A stretch of DNA of 64,000 nucleotides from Podarcis muralis (lineage: Eukaryota), in the NCBI RefSeq assembly GCF_964188315.1, contig NC_135662.1, positions 29,450,001 to 29,514,000 of the forward strand, given 5' to 3'. Of the stretch, positions 37,222 through 63,424 are shown one piece after another. Numbering within the stretch: the stretch's first letter is position 1; each line of letters starts with the position of its first letter. Position numbers and translations under genes: made by a program. Under the pieces are notes generated by a model that saw only the letters and a list, made by a program, of their open reading frames with translations, was not told the DNA's origin and did not search any database.

Positions 37222-40200
37222 ATGGCTGATCCTTGGCAAGAATGCATGGATTATGCAGTTATTTTAGCAAGAAAAGCTGGAGAGGTATGTTTCAGGAAAT
37301 TTTTAATGTTTGATGTTTTATCATGTTTTTAATATTCTGTTGGGAGCCACCCAGAGTGGGGAAAGCCAGCCAGATGGGCGAGGTATAAATAATAAGTTGT
37401 TATTATTATAATATGCTTTGAATTTTTGTAAGCACATAATTATTCTGAAAAATATATATGTCTTGCTTGTACTTCTGTTTAGTACTTCAGCAGTATAAAA
37501 CGATGGGGTATTTGCAGAACAAATAAGGAGACCAACTCCATTTTAAAATATAAAAACAAAGGGAAGGTTTAGAAAAGCATGATCAGCTTTGCAAGGAAGT
37601 CCGAAAATATTGCAGTCTACAACATGCTGTACTTCCCTTCTGCTAGTCATTTTTGGATAGGCGACAATGATCACAATTGGCTGTGTTCAAGCCTGAGCAT
37701 GATAGCTGCTTTCAGATGAGCTGTTTACTATGGAATTGCCATTCCCCATCAACTCACCTTGAGAAGTCTTCCATATGACACTGTCATGCATTTGTAATCT
37801 TCCCATGGCCCTTTGTGGTTTCTGGCTTTTTTCTCTTTTTTTGTACCAGAAAGAATCTGATATGTTCTGAAAAGGCTGGAATAGTAGCACTTAGGTGGGG
37901 ATTGTTCATAACACCATTAAGTAGTCTTTGGAGAGGGCTTTGGATGTGTTAAGTGACATTGCTGGGGCAGAGAGAGCATGGCACCTCTCCTCATTTCTGG
38001 TGCATAAGCCCCTGAGCTTCTGCCTGTTCCACGAGGGAGGAAATGTTTTTGTGCAGCTGACTGAGTGCATTAACTTGTTTTCAAAAAGTGTCATGCAAAT
38101 AATTTTCTTTGCAGGTAGTCCGGGAAGCACTAACAAAGGACATAGCTATCATGATTAAAAGCTCTCCAGCAGATCTAGTGACTGTCACTGACCAAAAAGT
38201 AGAAAATATGCTTATTTCTTCTATAAAGGAAAAATACCCTTCTCACAGGTACAGAATATTTTAGATCTCAATTTTTTATTATCACAGGTATGAAACCTTT
38301 GATCCTGATGGCTCAAAATAAGCACAGGGAACCTGGCAAACTAATAACATAGTTTTTTCTACATTTTAAGCTGTGCTTGTCTCACATAAGCTCCATTTAT
38401 CACACTTCAATTCTAGTTAGGTAAGGATGGTAAAAGGGAGAATAATGGAATCTCCAACCCCTGTAGGCAGTAACTAAGGAAGCTTCTTTCAGTTATGGCA
38501 AAATGGCAGGATGACACAAGGGTGTGGTAGAAGCCAAGAGAAATGAATGACAGGCTATGCAAATATGAAGAGGTGGATCACAGAGTCAGCATGGTGTTAT
38601 GGTTGCTGCTTAGGCAGGGGTAGCCCATTTGCCCTGGATGCAGGCAAGCCATGATCATTTGCGGGTGAGTATACCAGTGATATCAGTCTCTGCAGGTCAG
38701 GAAGAGTCTTAATTGTAAGATGGTGCGCCATGCTATTAGGCCTATGTGGGAAGATTACGTTTTATTCCAAGTGTTGTGCGTGTAGAATGTGTGAAAGGTT
38801 GCCTGCTGTCTATAGAGATGGAGTTTGCAGCTCCTAAAAAAGTGGGAAGGTCAGATTATATCTAACTAGGTATGGTTGTGACAGCTTCATAGACCTGGAA
38901 CGTGGATTATAGGTCTGACATGTTTTTTCAGTGTGGTACAATATGAGAAGTGGGCTGCTCCTATTGGGAGAGATGAAATCACTGCCATGTGGGGAATAGC
39001 CAGGCAATGTGAAGGTGAGGCAAGTCTGGCAGAGAACAGCAATGTGCACATGGGCATCTTGTTTCTCAAGACAGAAGAGCAAGCCTGATCCAAGAGGTCA
39101 GGACTTCCCAACTGACCTGCTGTGACAAATCTAGCCCTCTTCTTTGGCCAGTGCTTAGGGGAGATACACAGGATAAATCTATTAACTGACACATCCTAGT
39201 TCTAGGACTCATTTTAGGTTCAAAGTCTCACATAGGTGCAAAGGAAGGATGCAAAATACCAGTGGTGGCAGAAGGGGCTCTCTCTACTTTAGCAAGTTCT
39301 GCTGGGTTATATGGGGAGAACCAATATAGTGGAGATTTCCAGTGCAACCTCATTGCTTACCAAGCATATATGACAGATATATAGCAGAAAGCGCTGTATC
39401 ATACAACACATAACTACTTTGTGCAATTCACTCCCACAAGATATTGTAATGATCTCTGGCTTATGTGACATGAAAAGGAGATCACAAAAAGACATGAAAG
39501 ATGGAGTTTTAGAGACACACCAGGACAGAGGCAGTAGTGGGGAAGGTTGTTGCATTCCTGCCGTCTTTGTGGGCTGTCCAGAGTCATCAAGCCCACAAGA
39601 CCACTGTGGGCTGCCAGGACCACATCCTGCCTAGTCTAGGAAGCTGAAATAAATCCGACAAGGCTTCTTATGGCTATCTATTTCCTGTGCATAAAATGAA
39701 TCCGTACCATGGAGAATGGGATGTTCTATAAACGATTTGTTGGATGAATGATCATTTTTGAAGTTGTGACATTTTAAGATCTATATGTGACAGGTGTAAA
39801 TCCTTATATGTTTGTTTGTTTGTTTGCTCATTATTTTTTTAAAATATCCCCATAGTTTTATTGGAGAAGAATCTGTTGCTGCTGGTGCAAAAAGTACCTT
39901 GACAGATAATCCCACTTGGATTATTGACCCTATTGATGGAACGACTAACTTCGTTCACAGGTATGTTTTTTGCATCTTTCTCTTAGAGTCACGGTGGGCG
40001 TGTTTAGGTGTCACATTAAATCACAAACCGATCACACCCACTTCACTCTTCCCCACTAGCACTGGGAAGAAACAAACTATGATCCCATTCTCAGCATTAC
40101 ATCAGCCAGAGAGTACAGTTTGGTTTGCTCCAAACAAACCACCATATCTAAGCAATGTTTCTTCTTGACTTATTGATCATAGTTGGGGGTTTTTTAAGTC

Positions 40201-43200
40201 AACTAAATTGCAGTCTTTGATTTGGACATCACATTAAGCTATGGTTTGTTTCTCGCCTGTGAAAATAGTGAAGTGAGCATGATTGACTTGTGCAATATAC
40301 CTCTGTGCTTTCCCTCCTCTGGAATCAGAGTAAGATCTTTGTGCTGTGCTGTGATATGGTCATCTTAGACTTTGCTTTCCAGTTTGTATTTGATTAGGAG
40401 TAGCTAGTTAAAATGTTGCCTTAGTTCTCTAATTTACAGTTGAACACATGCTGCCTGTCAATCATTAACATTATGCCTCTGAGCTTACAAGTGCAATATG
40501 CTTATCTCTTTGGTTTTCAAGGTTTCCCTTTGTGGCTGTTTCAATTGGCTTTGTTGTAAAGAAACAGGTAACTTATAATTTCTTTTTAACATACAGTAAA
40601 AAAGTAAAATACTACCATTGCAGCCTACACACAAAATGCAAACTTTTTTTTTGAAAGCATAACCCTCCCCCCTATGATATTTCATTTGTTTGGTTGCAGA
40701 TGGAATTTGGAATTGTATACAGCTGTGTAGAAGACAAAATGTACACCGGCAGGAAAGGGAAAGGAGCATTTTGCAATGGGCAAAAGCTCCAAGTATCAAA
40801 GCAACAAGGTACGGTTTTTGCATTAATATAGCAGTATGACTATACAAAATTGGGAAAGTGATGGGCCAGATTCAACTAACCTGGTGCCCCAGCAGAATGA
40901 CTTCCACTAGCACAACAGGGCTTCTCCACCTCTCACTGTGCCTCCCCCAGATCCTACTGTAAAGGGTAAAGTGAACCCTCAGGATAGTGCTCACGGGAAG
41001 GAGAGGGGAGATAGCTATTTCCAGCAAGCAGAAATGCTTATGCTGGCAGAATGGTCATCTTAGCACAATGTTGAATTTCACCCCGTGGATTGAGAATTGC
41101 AAAGACCCAATTGTTGACTTAAATCTATTTTGGATGTACAGTGGTACCTCGGTTTACGAACTTAATCCATTCCAGAAGTCCGTTCTTAAACCAAAACCGT
41201 TCTTAAACCAAGGCACGCTTTCCCTAATGAGGCCTCCCACCGCCAGTGCCCTTCCACCGTTCGGATTCCGTTCTTAGAATGAGGTAAAGTTCTCAAACCA
41301 ATACGCTATTTCTGGTTTTGCGGAGTTTGTAAACCAAATCGTTCTTAAGCCAGACTGTTCTTAAACCGAGGTACCACTATGTTAGAATAGAATTCATGAT
41401 TTCACCCAGAAAACGCTATGCTGGAGACTAGATCATTCATGTGAACAAAATGTAATGAGTGTTTTTCCATACTAGCTTCACTGTTCATTTTACGTATTAT
41501 CTGTAGGATAATAAACATACAATTTTCAGCTCAGAAGACCATAGAGAACCTTTGGGTGCATAGTGAAATCTGCTCCTTCAAGTAATGTTGAGGCAGCAGG
41601 GTTGGCCCATGTATCAGTCTTGTGCTTATTTTTTGATCTTATTAGAGACCATATGTTCACCAAAGGGCACTGTATAAATTCAGGTAAGTGCAGGAAGCAG
41701 AGGCCAAATCCTGACACCCCTAGTGTGTTACATGCAAATTTCTATTTATTTGCAGATTTATAAAGCGCTTCACAACCAAAAGCTATTGAAGTGGTGTACA
41801 GTAAAGTAAGATAAAAGTACAAAAGATCAGGAACTCTGTGAGCAAAAGGCAATAAAACCATTTGTATGAATATTGTATAACGGTTTAATGAGTTATATGC
41901 TGGGGGGGGGGGAACATTGTGTGAGTACTTTTCTTAAATACTCGCTGTTTTTCCTTTGAGCTACAACAACCAAATCTGAATTAAAGTAATGGTCAGACTT
42001 TTCTACCTTTCCTCTCTCCCCCCCCCAACCTCTCTACAGATATTACAAAAGCACTCTTAGTGTCAGAGCTAGGATCCAACCGTGATCCAGAGGTTATAAA
42101 AACTGTTCTTTCTAACATGCAAAGACTACTGAACATTCCTATTCATGGGTATGTCTTCTTCTTCTTGTTTGTTTGTTTATTAAATTACTCTACTGTCCTG
42201 CATCCGAAGGTCACAGGGCAGTTTATGCATGCCATTACCAAAAAACAATAACCCTCCCACAAACAGTTTAAAAGGTTGTAAAGGTAAAGGGACCCCTGAC
42301 CGTTAGGTCGTTGCGGACGACTCTGGGGTTGTGGCACTCATCTCACTTTATTGGCCGAGGGATCCGGCGTATAGCTTCCGGGTCATGTGGCCAGCATGAC
42401 TAAGCCGCTTCTGGCAAACCAGAGCAGCGCACGGAAACGCCATTTACCTTCCCACCAGAGTGGTACCTATTTATCTACTTGCACTTTGACGTGCTTTCGA
42501 ACTGCTAAGTTGGCAGGAGCTGGGACTGAGCAAGGGGAGCTCACCCTGTCGCAGGGAATCAAACCGCTGCCATTCTGATCGGCAAGCCCTGGATTGTTTA
42601 ATTAGCCAAAGGCTAATTAAAGAAGAGGAAAGTTTTTGCTTAGTGCCTAAAGAAATGTAATAAAGGTGTCAGGCAAGCCTTCCTGAGGAGAGCATTCCAC
42701 AAGTGGGGAGCCACCACACAAAGGTCCATTCCCATGTTACCGCCGTCCAGGCATCTCACAGACAAGGCCCACAAAGAAGGTCCTCAGATGATGATTGCAG
42801 GGTCTGCAGTGGTTCATATGGAAAGAGGTGGTCCTTGAGGTATTGTGGTCCTCAGCCGTTTAAGGCTTTATTGGTAAAAACCAGCGCTTTGAATTGAACC
42901 AGAAACCGATCGGCAGCTAGTACAGTCAGGCCACGATTGGTGTTATATGCTCAAACTGTCTTGCCCCGGTAAGCAACCTGGCTGATGAATTCTGCATCAG
43001 CTGAAGTTTCCGAACTGTGTTCAGAGGTACCCCACATATAACATGCTGCAGTAATCCAACCTAAAGGTCTATGCCCTGGCATAGACGACAGAAGTTAGGC
43101 TATCCCTGTCCTGATAGGGGCGCAGCTGGGCCACAAGCTGAAGCTGATGGAAGGCACTCTGGAGATCTGCATGGCACCAAAGAGGCTTGTTTAGAATGAG

Positions 43201-44583
43201 GCACAACTTAGTTTTTTTAACAAATAGTCTTTAAAACTGTAGTGTTGGCTATCCTTTCTTTAAAAATGTTTGCTTGTGTGTGAATAACAGCATATTTCAG
43301 TTGATGCAGGAAGGCGAGGGCAAGGCAGAGAACGTCAATGTTTGCAGCAGTTAAGTGAGCCTAATCTGGTGTTCTGTCGTGACCATGTCCTGGCCAAAAG
43401 TTCCACAAGGGGGCACTATTAAGAGGCCAAAAAGTCAGCTATTCTAAAGTGCTTAAGAGGTCAAACATAGTGGGGAGTTATATATAAATTAGGACATAAT
43501 GGAGGAATGATATGATGCAGCGTTGTGCTCCTATTAAAAAAATATGCAGCTATTGAGTTAGATCCAGACTGAGGATGCCTTCCTAAACTCACATACCGTA
43601 CTTGGGAATAAGCACTGTTCATCCCAATAGGATTTACTTCTGAGAAGACACGATTTCACAGAGACCTCTAAGTTGCATCACGACTAACTTATCTCACTGA
43701 TTTCACTGAAAGAGACCCAGGTCAAATGATTTTGTTTGCATCTGCTTCTTTTGCATTTCAAATGACTGGTGATTGCTGTGAATATTTTAATGTGAAACTG
43801 CAGGGTTTGAATTTGTTGCGATAATATACTTTCTCTGTTTTAGGATTAGAGCAGTTGGGACTGCAGCCGTAAACATGTGCCTGGTGGCGACAGGAGGAGC
43901 AGATGCCTACTACGAGATGGGCATTCACTGCTGGGATATGGCAGGGGCTGGGATTATCATTATGGAAGCGGGCGGAGTGCTGCTCGATGTCTCAGGTAAA
44001 ATATGTTGGGAATGTAACAAGACCAGTTAATTTCTGCTTTCTTAACTGAGCAATGTGCATTTGTGATGTGCAATTCTGATTGTGCCCTATGTCTTTAAAG
44101 GTTGTCAGTTTAGTAAACAGTAGGTGGAGCTTTAGAATTTGAGTGTATTCCATCCAGTGGGTTGTCAGGGTCTCAAGTTTTTGCAGGATTTAACCCACTA
44201 CTTTTGTCCTGGAAAACACACCAGATTAGTATGACTAGCAGACAGGGGTTGCCTGTACTGTAAACCACTATGCAATCTTCAGATGAAGGGTGGTATATTA
44301 TTATTATTATTATTATTAGGTTACTTTGGAGTGGTCCTTAATAAATTTTCACATGACTTATCCAGAGGATTTCGATAATTATAGCTAAAACTCTGCTTCA
44401 TAATATTAGTTCATAAATAACACTGTAAATCAGTTGTGTTTGTTGTTGTTTTTTTCGTCCCCAGGGGCACCATTTGATTTGATGTCAAGAAGAATAATTG
44501 CTGCAAATAGCCAAGTACTAGCAGAGCGAATAGCAAAAGAGATTCAGATCATTCCCTACCAAAGGGATGACGAAACAAATTAA
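37222..44583 (+). CDS. IMPA1: Inositol monophosphatase 1, 278 aa
   Basis: Coding exons 37222-37284, 38115-38248, 39856-39960, 40522-40567, 40700-40808, 42040-42148, 43844-43995 and 44465-44583 (837 nt, all GT-AG). [13 protein letters not shown] start. Catalytic motifs [17 protein letters not shown] and GIHCWDMAG are intact. Confidence 0.97.
41139..41379. mobile_element. Tc1/mariner-type MITE in an IMPA1 intron
   Basis: TA-CAGTGGTACCTCGGTTTA...TAAACCGAGGTACCACT inverted ends. Confidence 0.82.
42279..42590 (-). mobile_element. Sauria SINE, head partly missing, in an IMPA1 intron
   Basis: aaggtaaagg tail, with a body matching 14807-15164. Confidence 0.88.
42640..43150 (-). mobile_element. Older L2 LINE fragment
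   Basis: Decayed sequence resembling the minus-strand L2 at 60122-60550 (agcattccaca...ccaccac...ggtcctcag...gccgtttaaggcttta). Confidence 0.55.
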
Positions 44584-53014: not shown

Positions 53015-53020
53015 TTTATT
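53015..53020 (-). terminator. Polyadenylation signal of the minus-strand FABP gene
   Basis: AATAAA on the minus strand, about 90 nt downstream of the TGA at 53109. Confidence 0.6.
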
Positions 53021-53108: not shown

Positions 53109-55153
53109 TCACACTCTTCCATAGACTCTGGTACAAATGATGTCATTCATGATACATTCCTAGCAAATGAAAAGAATAATAGGTTACAATCCATAGTCTT
53201 CAATCATCTTTATAGCAATGCTGGTGTCTTCTCAGTTGTTTCTATGTGTGGGGTTGTGATGCTGTTGCCAGTCACACTGGCCCAGTTTGCATGTTACATT
53301 AAACCATAGCTTATGACCAAGCAGCAGACCTGCACATGCTGTTGAAATCATGGACACACGAATCCTACCCTTCCTCATATACTTTGGGGGCTGTCTACTC
53401 ACTCCTTCTGTAACTGCCTCACAGAAAGGACATAGGGGTAGAATAGCAATTTGTTAACTTCAGAAGGGTGGTTGTCATAATACAATGCAGCTATCAAGGC
53501 TGTAGTGTCAAGAGCCAAGGAGAATGCTATTCTTCCCAATTTCTTCTTGTTTTTTCCCTTCCATGCTCCAGTCTGATGGGCGGGGAAGGTATACTATGTC
53601 CTAGTACTGGTGAAATCAACTTGATTGGGAAGAATAGCATTATCCTTGGCTCTTGACACTACAGCCTTGATTGCTGCAACTTTAAGCAAACAACAACAAC
53701 AACAGAACTGACTGCCTTAAAACCCCGGGTGAAACGTAATGAGCTGCCCTGCATAATCAGACCATTGGTCCATCTGGTTCAGTTCTGTCTCACACTGACT
53801 GGCAGGGACTTTCAGACAGAGGACCTTAGCAGCCCTAGCTGGCGATACTCAGGATTGAACCTGGAACTGTTTGAATGCTCCATAGGGTTGCTATATTCCC
53901 CCCAAACGTCAATTCCGCCTTTGAAATCCCTGTAATGTCCAACAGAATCCGGACATATGGCAGCCCTATCTTCCGCCACTGGACTATGGTCCTTCCCCTG
54001 GTCACATGGATGTATGAATGAAATGGAAAAAGCTTACCAACACCATAGTTCCATCTGCTATTTTTCGTTTGATGATAGTCTCGTTGCCATTCCACTTCTG
54101 CACTTGAATCAGAGTATCATTCTCTCTTGTTATAATGCTCTTAAAAATAATGATAAAAGTAAGAGTTATAAGGAGATGAATTTTTGGTTTTACCTGCTAT
54201 CTTTCTTCTCCCCCACCAACAGCAATATACTGTATTTATCTAATTGAAGTTCTGATTATTAGCAGACCCCTCTGTCAAGATACTGCACTTCCCACCATGG
54301 GAACCATTCCTAGGGGAAACAATAATATTCACCTTGGCACGCCTGTTATCCATTGTTATTTCCTCAAACTCTTGGTCTAGCTTGAAGGAAATCTCAGCAA
54401 CTTTAAAGACAGTCTCTGTTCTGATGGTGGCTACATCTTTGTCTGTGGTGATGATCATGGTGGGTTTGGCTAGGCTGGCCAGTTTCCTTTGGGCAAAACC
54501 TACTCCTGCAGATGAGAAGGAAAACAGAATTCCACCTTGGGAGACTGACATTACCCTGTCTCTCACCTAGGGCCACTCTCAACCATCTACCAACCCCATG
54601 AGTACACAATCCCTGGACCTTAACAAAGGCCCCCAAAATATGACCCAAAAGAAGAAGAAGAAAGCAAAAAACAGAGACAAAGAAAGGGGAAAGAAACAAG
54701 AAGATGGAAGGAGAGAGAAAGAGAAAATAGAAAAAGGAAAGGGAAAAAAGGAAAAGAAACATTAGAGAAAAATAAAAAGGACTTCTGATTCTCCATCTGC
54801 CAGTTACATAAAAACAGTGGGAGGAGAGTATTTAAGATATTCAGTCCATGATAACATCTATTTTCTGTTAAACAGTATTTCTTTTAAGCCAAAGTGCCTC
54901 AGACTCATTCTGAACAGTTTTCTTGTTGCCCCACTCCTTTCCCAGGGAAAACCTATTCTTTAGTGCTAAATCGGAGCAAACATCAATCCAGAGAAAATCT
55001 GCCGTTTCCTTGGATTGAATGCTAAAGAGCCATTTCCCCCAGGGGATAAGCCCTTAGTTTGTGACAAAATGTTTGCTTACCCAGTTCTTTCATATATTCA
55101 TCAAAATTTTCACTAGAGATGAGTTTCCAGGTTCCTGAGAACTGCTCAACCAT
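53109..55153 (-). CDS. Fatty acid-binding protein, FABP9/FABP12-like (FABP4/PMP2 subfamily), 132 aa
   Basis: Canonical FABP exons of 73/173/102/51 nt: 55153-55081, 54505-54333, 54139-54038 and 53159-53109, all GT-AG. Protein: [132 protein letters not shown]. Orthology is unresolved, so no symbol is given. Confidence 0.95.
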
Positions 55154-55469
55154 TATGTAAGAGTGATGGGGGGGAAATCCTCGTGAGTACTGCTGTATGG
55201 GGAAACATGATGATATTTTTTTGTAGGAAAAAGGTAGCTTTTGGCGGGCCAGCTCCAGATTTTTTTATGCCCTTGGCATGTTCAGACAGGGAGTTAGTTG
55301 CTACAGAATGTCGTCTCCTGGGCTGCCACCTGCCAAACTTATAAGGGTGGTGGGACTACCTAGAAGGTCCCTCTGCTGATCTGAGAGGGTATCTCAAATA
55401 TTTGGGGCCTCAGTCATTTAGACCTTTAAATAGTTGGGTTGCCTAGGGGTTCACTACTATCTCTCATCA

Positions 55470-63351: not shown

Positions 63352-63424
63352 ATGTGTGAACAATTTTTGGGAACCTGGAAGCTTGTTTCCACTGAAAAAT
63401 TTGATGACTATATGAAAGAACTTG
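63352..63424 (+). CDS. FABP4: Adipocyte-type FABP (FABP4-like), coding exon 1 only; gene continues beyond the window
   Basis: 73-nt exon MCEQFLGTWKLVSTEKFDDYMKEL(G) followed by GTAAGT. The MC- start, position and strand fit FABP4, but one exon cannot exclude another paralogue. Confidence 0.75.

Follow-up and report, generated by a model that had tools for sequence, protein, structure and literature searches.

The window analysed here is a 64-kb stretch of Podarcis muralis DNA (positions 29,450,001 to 29,514,000 of NC_135662.1, forward strand) in which a gene encoding a fatty acid-binding protein (FABP), hereafter the focal gene, lies between IMPA1 and the FABP4 orthologue. The order in P. muralis is IMPA1 (plus strand), focal gene (minus strand), FABP4 orthologue (plus strand) and PMP2 orthologue (plus strand); the focal gene is convergent with IMPA1 and head-to-head with FABP4, from whose start codon its own is 8.2 kb away. 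No further FABP exons or pseudo-exons were found in the 64-kb window besides those of the focal gene and the first exon of FABP4. The features are listed below in window coordinates unless otherwise stated.

39854..44583, plus strand: 3' part of IMPA1, with the CDS ending at 44583; the 278-aa product carries PF00459, and the region gives a tblastx match to the snake IMPA1 region.
53015..53020, minus strand: poly(A) signal AATAAA, 89 nt past the stop codon; read from the sequence and presumably used, the RNA runs having given no 3'-end reads.
53109..53159, minus strand: coding part of exon 4; 51 nt, residues 117-132 (with R127 and Y129), then TGA.
54038..54139, minus strand: exon 3; 102 nt, residues 83-116 including R107, with AG/GT flanks.
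54333..54505, minus strand: exon 2; 173 nt, residues 25-82, with AG/GT flanks, a PF00061 match (E 3.3e-6) and RNA reads.
55081..55153, minus strand: coding part of exon 1; ATG at 55153-55151, 73 nt (codons 1-24 plus 1 nt), donor GT immediately following, a Pfam PF00061 match and RNA reads in the bin 55062-55148.
55260..55269, minus strand: A-rich, TATA-like stretch about 110 nt upstream of the ATG; a putative core promoter, read from the sequence only.
63352..63424, plus strand: exon 1 of the FABP4 orthologue, 88-92% identical to squamate FABP4-like exon 1 and followed by GTAAGT; the remainder lies past the window, the gene ending at record position 29520396.
Record positions 29526984-29531368, plus strand: PMP2 orthologue of P. 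muralis, beyond the window.

The focal gene consists of four exons on the minus strand (53109-55153) with coding lengths of 73, 173, 102 and 51 nt, all introns being of the GT...AG type; the joined frame of 399 nt encodes 132 amino acids followed by TGA, with R107, R127 and Y129 present. The first-pass annotation, which was made from the sequence alone, had described an intact gene at this place with intact splice sites, ligand residues (R107/R127/Y129) and poly(A) signal, and the four-exon structure, the 132-aa frame, the GT-AG introns and the AATAAA at 53020-53015 bear this out. The FABP3/4/5/7/8/9/12 group is recognised by three introns that separate four exons, of which exon 2 measures 173 nt and exon 3 measures 102 nt (PMC7193176), and the focal gene has this exon number and these exon sizes. 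Database searches were run exon by exon, and the joined translation was compared with database proteins. Exon 2 scored 27.8 bits against the PF00061 profile (cut-off, 23 bits) and matched the solved structures of PMP2 and FABP4 with E values of about 1e-17, and exon 3 matched those of PMP2 and FABP9 with E values of 1e-8 to 1e-6. Over its 132 residues, the joined translation shows no difference from RefSeq XP_028592442 to XP_028592445, "myelin P2 protein-like [Podarcis muralis]", and the annotated gene range on OZ076961.1 (GCA_964188315.1) matches the coordinates of the focal gene exactly. The 90% cluster containing the identical protein, for the representative of which PF00061 is precomputed, also includes proteins of P. 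raffonei, P. lilfordi, Zootoca vivipara and Lacerta agilis. The focal gene clearly belongs to the FABP family; it is not new, having already been annotated with a generic name assigned automatically.

In mammals, FABP12 is found between FABP4 and IMPA1, and FABP9 between PMP2 and FABP4, FABP4 thus separating FABP9 from FABP12; in human, IMPA1, FABP12 and FABP4 are co-oriented. The position of the focal gene between FABP4 and IMPA1 in P. muralis, P. raffonei and a snake is that of FABP12. The coordinates of its neighbours agree with the earlier description of a gene in the FABP12 slot on the opposite strand, convergent with IMPA1 and head-to-head with FABP4; the FABP12-type orientation, in which the strand is shared with FABP4, PMP2 and IMPA1, is not the one found. 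With regard to the mammalian co-orientation on which that description drew, FABP12 and PMP2 were seen on the same strand in one species, Mus pahari (both on the minus strand of LT608287.1), and the human strands of IMPA1 and FABP4 are taken as general background. The focal gene and the PMP2-like gene of the lizard, unlike FABP12 and PMP2 of Mus pahari, are on opposite strands; the lizard gene and mammalian FABP12 are therefore oppositely oriented relative to PMP2. Read in the locus orientation of OZ076961.1, the annotated order is FABP(-)/focal gene(+)/IMPA1(-).

The same layout was seen in other squamates. P. raffonei is arranged as P. muralis, the orthologue of the snake Ahaetulla prasina is convergent with IMPA1, and that of the gecko Eublepharis macularius is head-to-head with a FABP4-like gene 12.7 kb away. 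The locus tags of Phrynocephalus are consecutive (012855, PMP2-like; 012856, FABP4-like; 012857, like the focal gene), which suggests the gene order of P. muralis if tags follow position. Since the orientation recurs in P. raffonei, the snake and the gecko, the arrangement dates at least to the squamate ancestor. The first-pass annotation had allowed for a local misassembly, which is rejected because independent assemblies agree on the orientation; it had also allowed for an orientation that is general and a gene that is already annotated, and this is what the three other species and the RefSeq identity reveal.

The AlphaFold2 model of the protein, built from a 47-sequence alignment, has a mean pLDDT of 95.8 and comprises 10 strands and 2 helices, such that the ten-stranded beta-barrel and helix-turn-helix lid of the family are both present in the predicted structure. 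TM-scores are 0.98-0.99 against human PMP2 (61% identity) and 0.97-0.98 against FABP4 and FABP9, and the best match among solved structures is PMP2 (1PMP, E 1e-52). Across the 47 family members, R107 and Y129 are invariant and R127 nearly so, and F58, K22, R31 and K32 are conserved in at least 90% of them. The clade of the focal gene has substitutions of its own around the portal loop, for instance Val60 where other members have Asn, and these could shift ligand entry or membrane contact. The dN/dS ratio between the focal gene and its gecko orthologue is 0.28 (dS 0.54), which indicates purifying selection; between two Podarcis species it is 0.52, on only 9 differences. Identity between Podarcis and gecko or snake is about 76% for the focal gene, 90-92% for PMP2 and 83-85% for FABP4, and the focal gene thus evolves faster than its two neighbours.

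Expression of the focal gene was very low in three stranded P. muralis RNA-seq runs, the tissues of which are coded: each placed 3-5 reads on it per about 12.7 million records. On the strand that a minus-strand mRNA should give, RNA depth fell in bins over exons 1-3, most reads being only partly aligned, and no splice junction of the gene rose above the listing threshold in the three runs. A few reads of the opposite strand map to introns 3 and 1 (53844-54017 and 54888-55061) and could come from repeats or antisense transcription, their number being too small to judge. Another run indexed as possible RNA gave DNA-like, even coverage of the introns and was not taken as RNA; contigs from it break at an inverted repeat in intron 3, the two 55-nt arms of which (53486-53540 and 53624-53678) are 96% complementary and 83 nt apart, probably representing the remnant of a small hairpin-forming transposon. 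Intron 1 harbors a long CT-rich low-complexity tract (54640-54790) at which RNA reads appear cut and within which 54711-54756 is flagged as a skipped repeat.

The scarcity of RNA reads and the Podarcis ratio are what one would cite for an unexpressed relic, or for a locus whose orientation is an artefact of assembly. We regard this reading as extremely improbable: the reads that were recovered lie on exons and on the expected strand, every species examined has an intact open reading frame and intact splice sites, the dN/dS ratio over the deeper comparison is low, and the orientation is the same in independent assemblies. Taken together, the intact structure, predicted fold, conserved ligand triad and selective constraint argue for a functional gene, for which fatty-acid binding and trafficking may be expected from its family. 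It would encode a 132-aa cytosolic lipid chaperone in which Arg107, Arg127 and Tyr129 would hold the fatty-acid carboxylate.

Geckos, iguanians (Sceloporus, Phrynosoma, Pogona and Phrynocephalus) and many snakes have full-length orthologues that are 70-80% identical to it, and the range for annotated orthologues becomes 70-96% when other lacertids are included. They are annotated either as "fatty acid-binding protein, adipocyte-like" or as "myelin P2 protein-like". For the orthologue of Lacerta agilis, the RefSeq model (260 aa) begins with 128 additional residues devoid of FABP similarity, which are likely a gene-model artefact. The orthogroup was already present in the squamate ancestor. Given the identical annotated RefSeq protein, the span of the orthogroup from geckos to snakes and the common orientation across squamates, the focal gene is not a local novelty. 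Among the matches, no protein of birds, crocodilians, Anolis, skinks, anguids or varanids grouped with it, though FABP4 and PMP2 of these taxa were recovered, which suggests lineage-specific loss or an annotation gap; either could explain why surveys based on anole and chicken missed the gene. Reviews and family surveys restrict FABP9 and FABP12 to mammals and list just FABP4, FABP5 and FABP8 in the anole cluster (PMC7193176, PMC6928644). Searches of the accessible literature returned no reptile counterpart of FABP12 and no description of the "myelin P2 protein-like" gene.

Turtles possess several relatives of the focal gene at 60-67% identity. These paralogues, labelled Ta, Tb1, Tb2, Tc and Td, are annotated as "myelin P2-like" or "FABP adipocyte-like". 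The cluster is strongly expanded in turtles (Chrysemys picta, CM062319.1, about 240.10-240.16 Mb; Dermochelys), where at least six FABP4/8/12-type genes are intact and differ in orientation; a FABP4-like remnant of exons 2-3 is also present. In the painted turtle, Td (135 aa) and FABP4 lie head-to-head at a distance of 2.7 kb. In Malaclemys, a neighbouring gene has a longer annotated isoform that spans Ta, and Chrysemys has upstream exon-like pieces that match. Within 10-kb flanks, neither IMPA1 nor PMP2 was reached as an anchor of the turtle cluster, and a search of the turtle and gecko loci for exons of IMPA1 found none.

Maximum-likelihood (ML) trees were built from 70 proteins over 132 columns under LG+C20+F+G4, and from a second set of 81 proteins with more turtle sequences; a quick tree of 96 rows had left the deep nodes unresolved. 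The trees were built without marsupial and monotreme FABP12 and without amphibian cluster genes, and the single available FABP5 sequence was dropped (branch length 1.78). A Gymnogyps californianus protein annotated as "FABP4 isoform X2" was left out of the tree set for behaving like a chimera; it fell at the base of the PMP2 clade and not with bird FABP4 (97/95), and it is possibly a chimeric read-through between neighbouring genes of the cluster.

In the 70-protein tree, the squamate clade of the focal gene was supported at 100/100, its union with turtle Ta at 91/72, and the larger group of focal clade, Ta, Tb1, Tb2 and mammalian FABP12 at 91/95. The amniote PMP2 clade (100/99) included a separate lizard PMP2, and FABP9 joined squamate FABP4 (86/89). 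The 81-protein tree again supported the squamate clade at 100/100, united amniote FABP4, squamates included, in one clade without the focal gene (90/87), set FABP9 apart (98/97) and gathered FABP12, the turtle extras, the focal clade and PMP2 in a starred clade (97/93). The free search on this second set placed the focal gene beside turtle Ta plus PMP2; a tree enforcing the focal gene with FABP12 and the turtle extras proved 0.42 lnL units better than the free search, so that in both data sets the best known tree contains this grouping. Two other assignments were rejected: an orthologue of PMP2 (FABP8), given the separate P. muralis PMP2 within the PMP2 clade, and FABP9, which lies on the other side of FABP4 and stood apart in both ML trees, although the AU test did not exclude its union with the focal gene.

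In that test, none of three alternatives was rejected: the focal gene with squamate FABP4 (delta lnL 12.7, p 0.11), the focal gene with FABP9 (delta lnL 8.3, p 0.26), and FABP12 with mammalian FABP4 (delta lnL 12.4, p 0.15). The stems of the focal clade, Ta and FABP12 are long (0.16-0.28), and long-branch attraction between them is therefore possible. Pairwise comparison of residues gave a flat picture, the focal protein being about 58-62% identical to each paralogue group (FABP4, FABP9, FABP12, PMP2 and the turtle extras), with 60% for FABP9 and 58% for FABP12. FABP12 and PMP2 each have 6 derived states in common with it, the turtle groups have 6-7 and FABP9 has 3, and the residue comparison found no rare change common only to the focal gene and FABP12. 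Percent identity and derived residues thus do not discriminate among the paralogue groups. The mixed FABP9/FABP12 character read from the sequence at first pass thereby reduces to equidistance and is not a signal.

That reading had been coupled to the proposal that the focal gene is a surviving pre-duplication orthologue of FABP9 and FABP12, that is, a single sauropsid gene equally related to both, the two having split later in mammals. The similar identities to FABP9 and FABP12 are in keeping with it, as is the p value of 0.26 for union with FABP9. The proposal nonetheless finds no support in the ML trees, where FABP9 and FABP12 were never sisters, FABP9 joining squamate FABP4 or standing alone and never accompanying the focal gene; FABP4 separates the two genes in mammals, and only half as many derived states link the focal gene to FABP9 as to FABP12 or PMP2. 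We consider this origin very unlikely.

A more serious competitor, to which we assign a lesser though real likelihood, is an independent duplication in sauropsids (or squamates): after the split from mammals, FABP4 or PMP2 would have given rise to an inverted tandem copy that came to occupy the same end of the cluster as FABP12 by chance, FABP12 being a separate mammalian duplication. Two of the AU results (p 0.11 and p 0.15) are compatible with such a history, as are the free search that put the focal gene near PMP2 and the choice of PMP2 as best structural match. The cluster has been dynamic in turtles, where at least six genes lie in both orientations, and a head-to-head layout is the product expected of an inverted duplication. 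The literature, too, calls FABP12 a mammalian tandem duplicate (PMC7193176, and Liu et al. 2008 as cited). Set against this, the best-likelihood trees of both data sets hold the focal gene, the turtle extras and FABP12 in one clade, alternative placements cost 8-13 lnL units, the amniote FABP4 clade excludes the focal gene, and its position between FABP4 and IMPA1 matches that of FABP12.

The focal gene is thus probably, at a level of confidence around or just above even, the sauropsid counterpart (orthologue or co-orthologue) of mammalian FABP12. What speaks for this affinity is the 91/95 clade, the gain of 0.42 lnL units under enforcement and the slot between FABP4 and IMPA1; what speaks against it is an alignment of only 132 columns, the alternatives left standing by the AU tests, the long stems, the orientation and the lack of a rare shared change. 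Membership of the FABP12 orthogroup is, in other words, supported by position and moderately by trees, and fails on orientation. The grouping with FABP12, which the first-pass annotation had said would, if clean, help to refute its reading, was obtained in the best ML trees at the moderate support noted above, with alternatives left by the AU tests; together with the existing RefSeq entry and the squamate-wide orientation, most of what the first-pass annotation had named as refuting its reading has come about, the FABP12 grouping being moderate rather than clean. As a whole, the explanation that we prefer, a functional gene of the FABP4/PMP2/FABP9/FABP12 cluster that is most likely the counterpart of FABP12, is held with slightly better than even confidence. 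Under this explanation, the orthogroup would be as old as the squamate ancestor and would always lie between FABP4 and IMPA1, head-to-head with FABP4, and the mammalian and sauropsid arrangements would be one inversion apart, in either direction.

There is about an even chance that the FABP12 lineage did not originate in mammals: a gene of the FABP12 type would have stood between FABP4 and IMPA1 in the amniote ancestor, would survive head-to-head with FABP4 in squamates, and would have been expanded in turtles and lost in archosaurs and perhaps Anolis. If true, these losses would explain the "mammal-only" label that arose from chicken- and anole-based surveys, and the view that FABP9 and FABP12 are confined to mammals would require a modest correction. 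The focal gene is an ordinary, functional and already annotated gene whose evolutionary placement is mildly interesting; it brings no new mechanism or fold. A conserved third cluster gene in squamates and several relatives in turtles do mean that the history of the cluster needs redrawing, and the automatic names "myelin P2 protein-like" and "FABP adipocyte-like" hide an orthogroup. For the poorly understood FABP12, the gene offers a point of access outside mammals, and it advises caution when FABPs are annotated across species.

Compared to known members of the cluster, the focal gene resembles mammalian FABP12 in subfamily, in its four exons and 132 residues, in its slot at the IMPA1 end next to FABP4 and in its grouping in the best ML trees. 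It differs in its strand, which is opposite with respect to FABP4, PMP2 and IMPA1, and in an identity of only 56-60%; it retains D77 and C118, where FABP12 has G and S, and the two have no diagnostic residue in common beyond a few also present in the turtle genes. Liu, Li and Godbout reportedly described mammalian FABP12 from retina and testis in 2008. With the turtle paralogues, the focal gene has 60-65% identity and membership of the same super-clade as FABP12, and Td is head-to-head with FABP4 as the focal gene is; turtles, however, have at least five such genes in mixed orientation where squamates have one, and the sister relationship with Ta in the 70-protein tree (91/72) is absent from the 81-protein free search. 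PMP2 (myelin P2, FABP8), from which the RefSeq name derives, has G34, L36, N99, M114 and C125 in common with the focal protein, whereas the lizard has a true PMP2 orthologue of its own, conserved at 90-92% among squamates versus about 76% for the focal gene. FABP4 and FABP9, finally, have the same fold, ligand triad and cluster, FABP4 being the immediate head-to-head neighbour; squamate FABP4, however, groups with amniote FABP4, and FABP9 never joins the focal gene in the ML trees.
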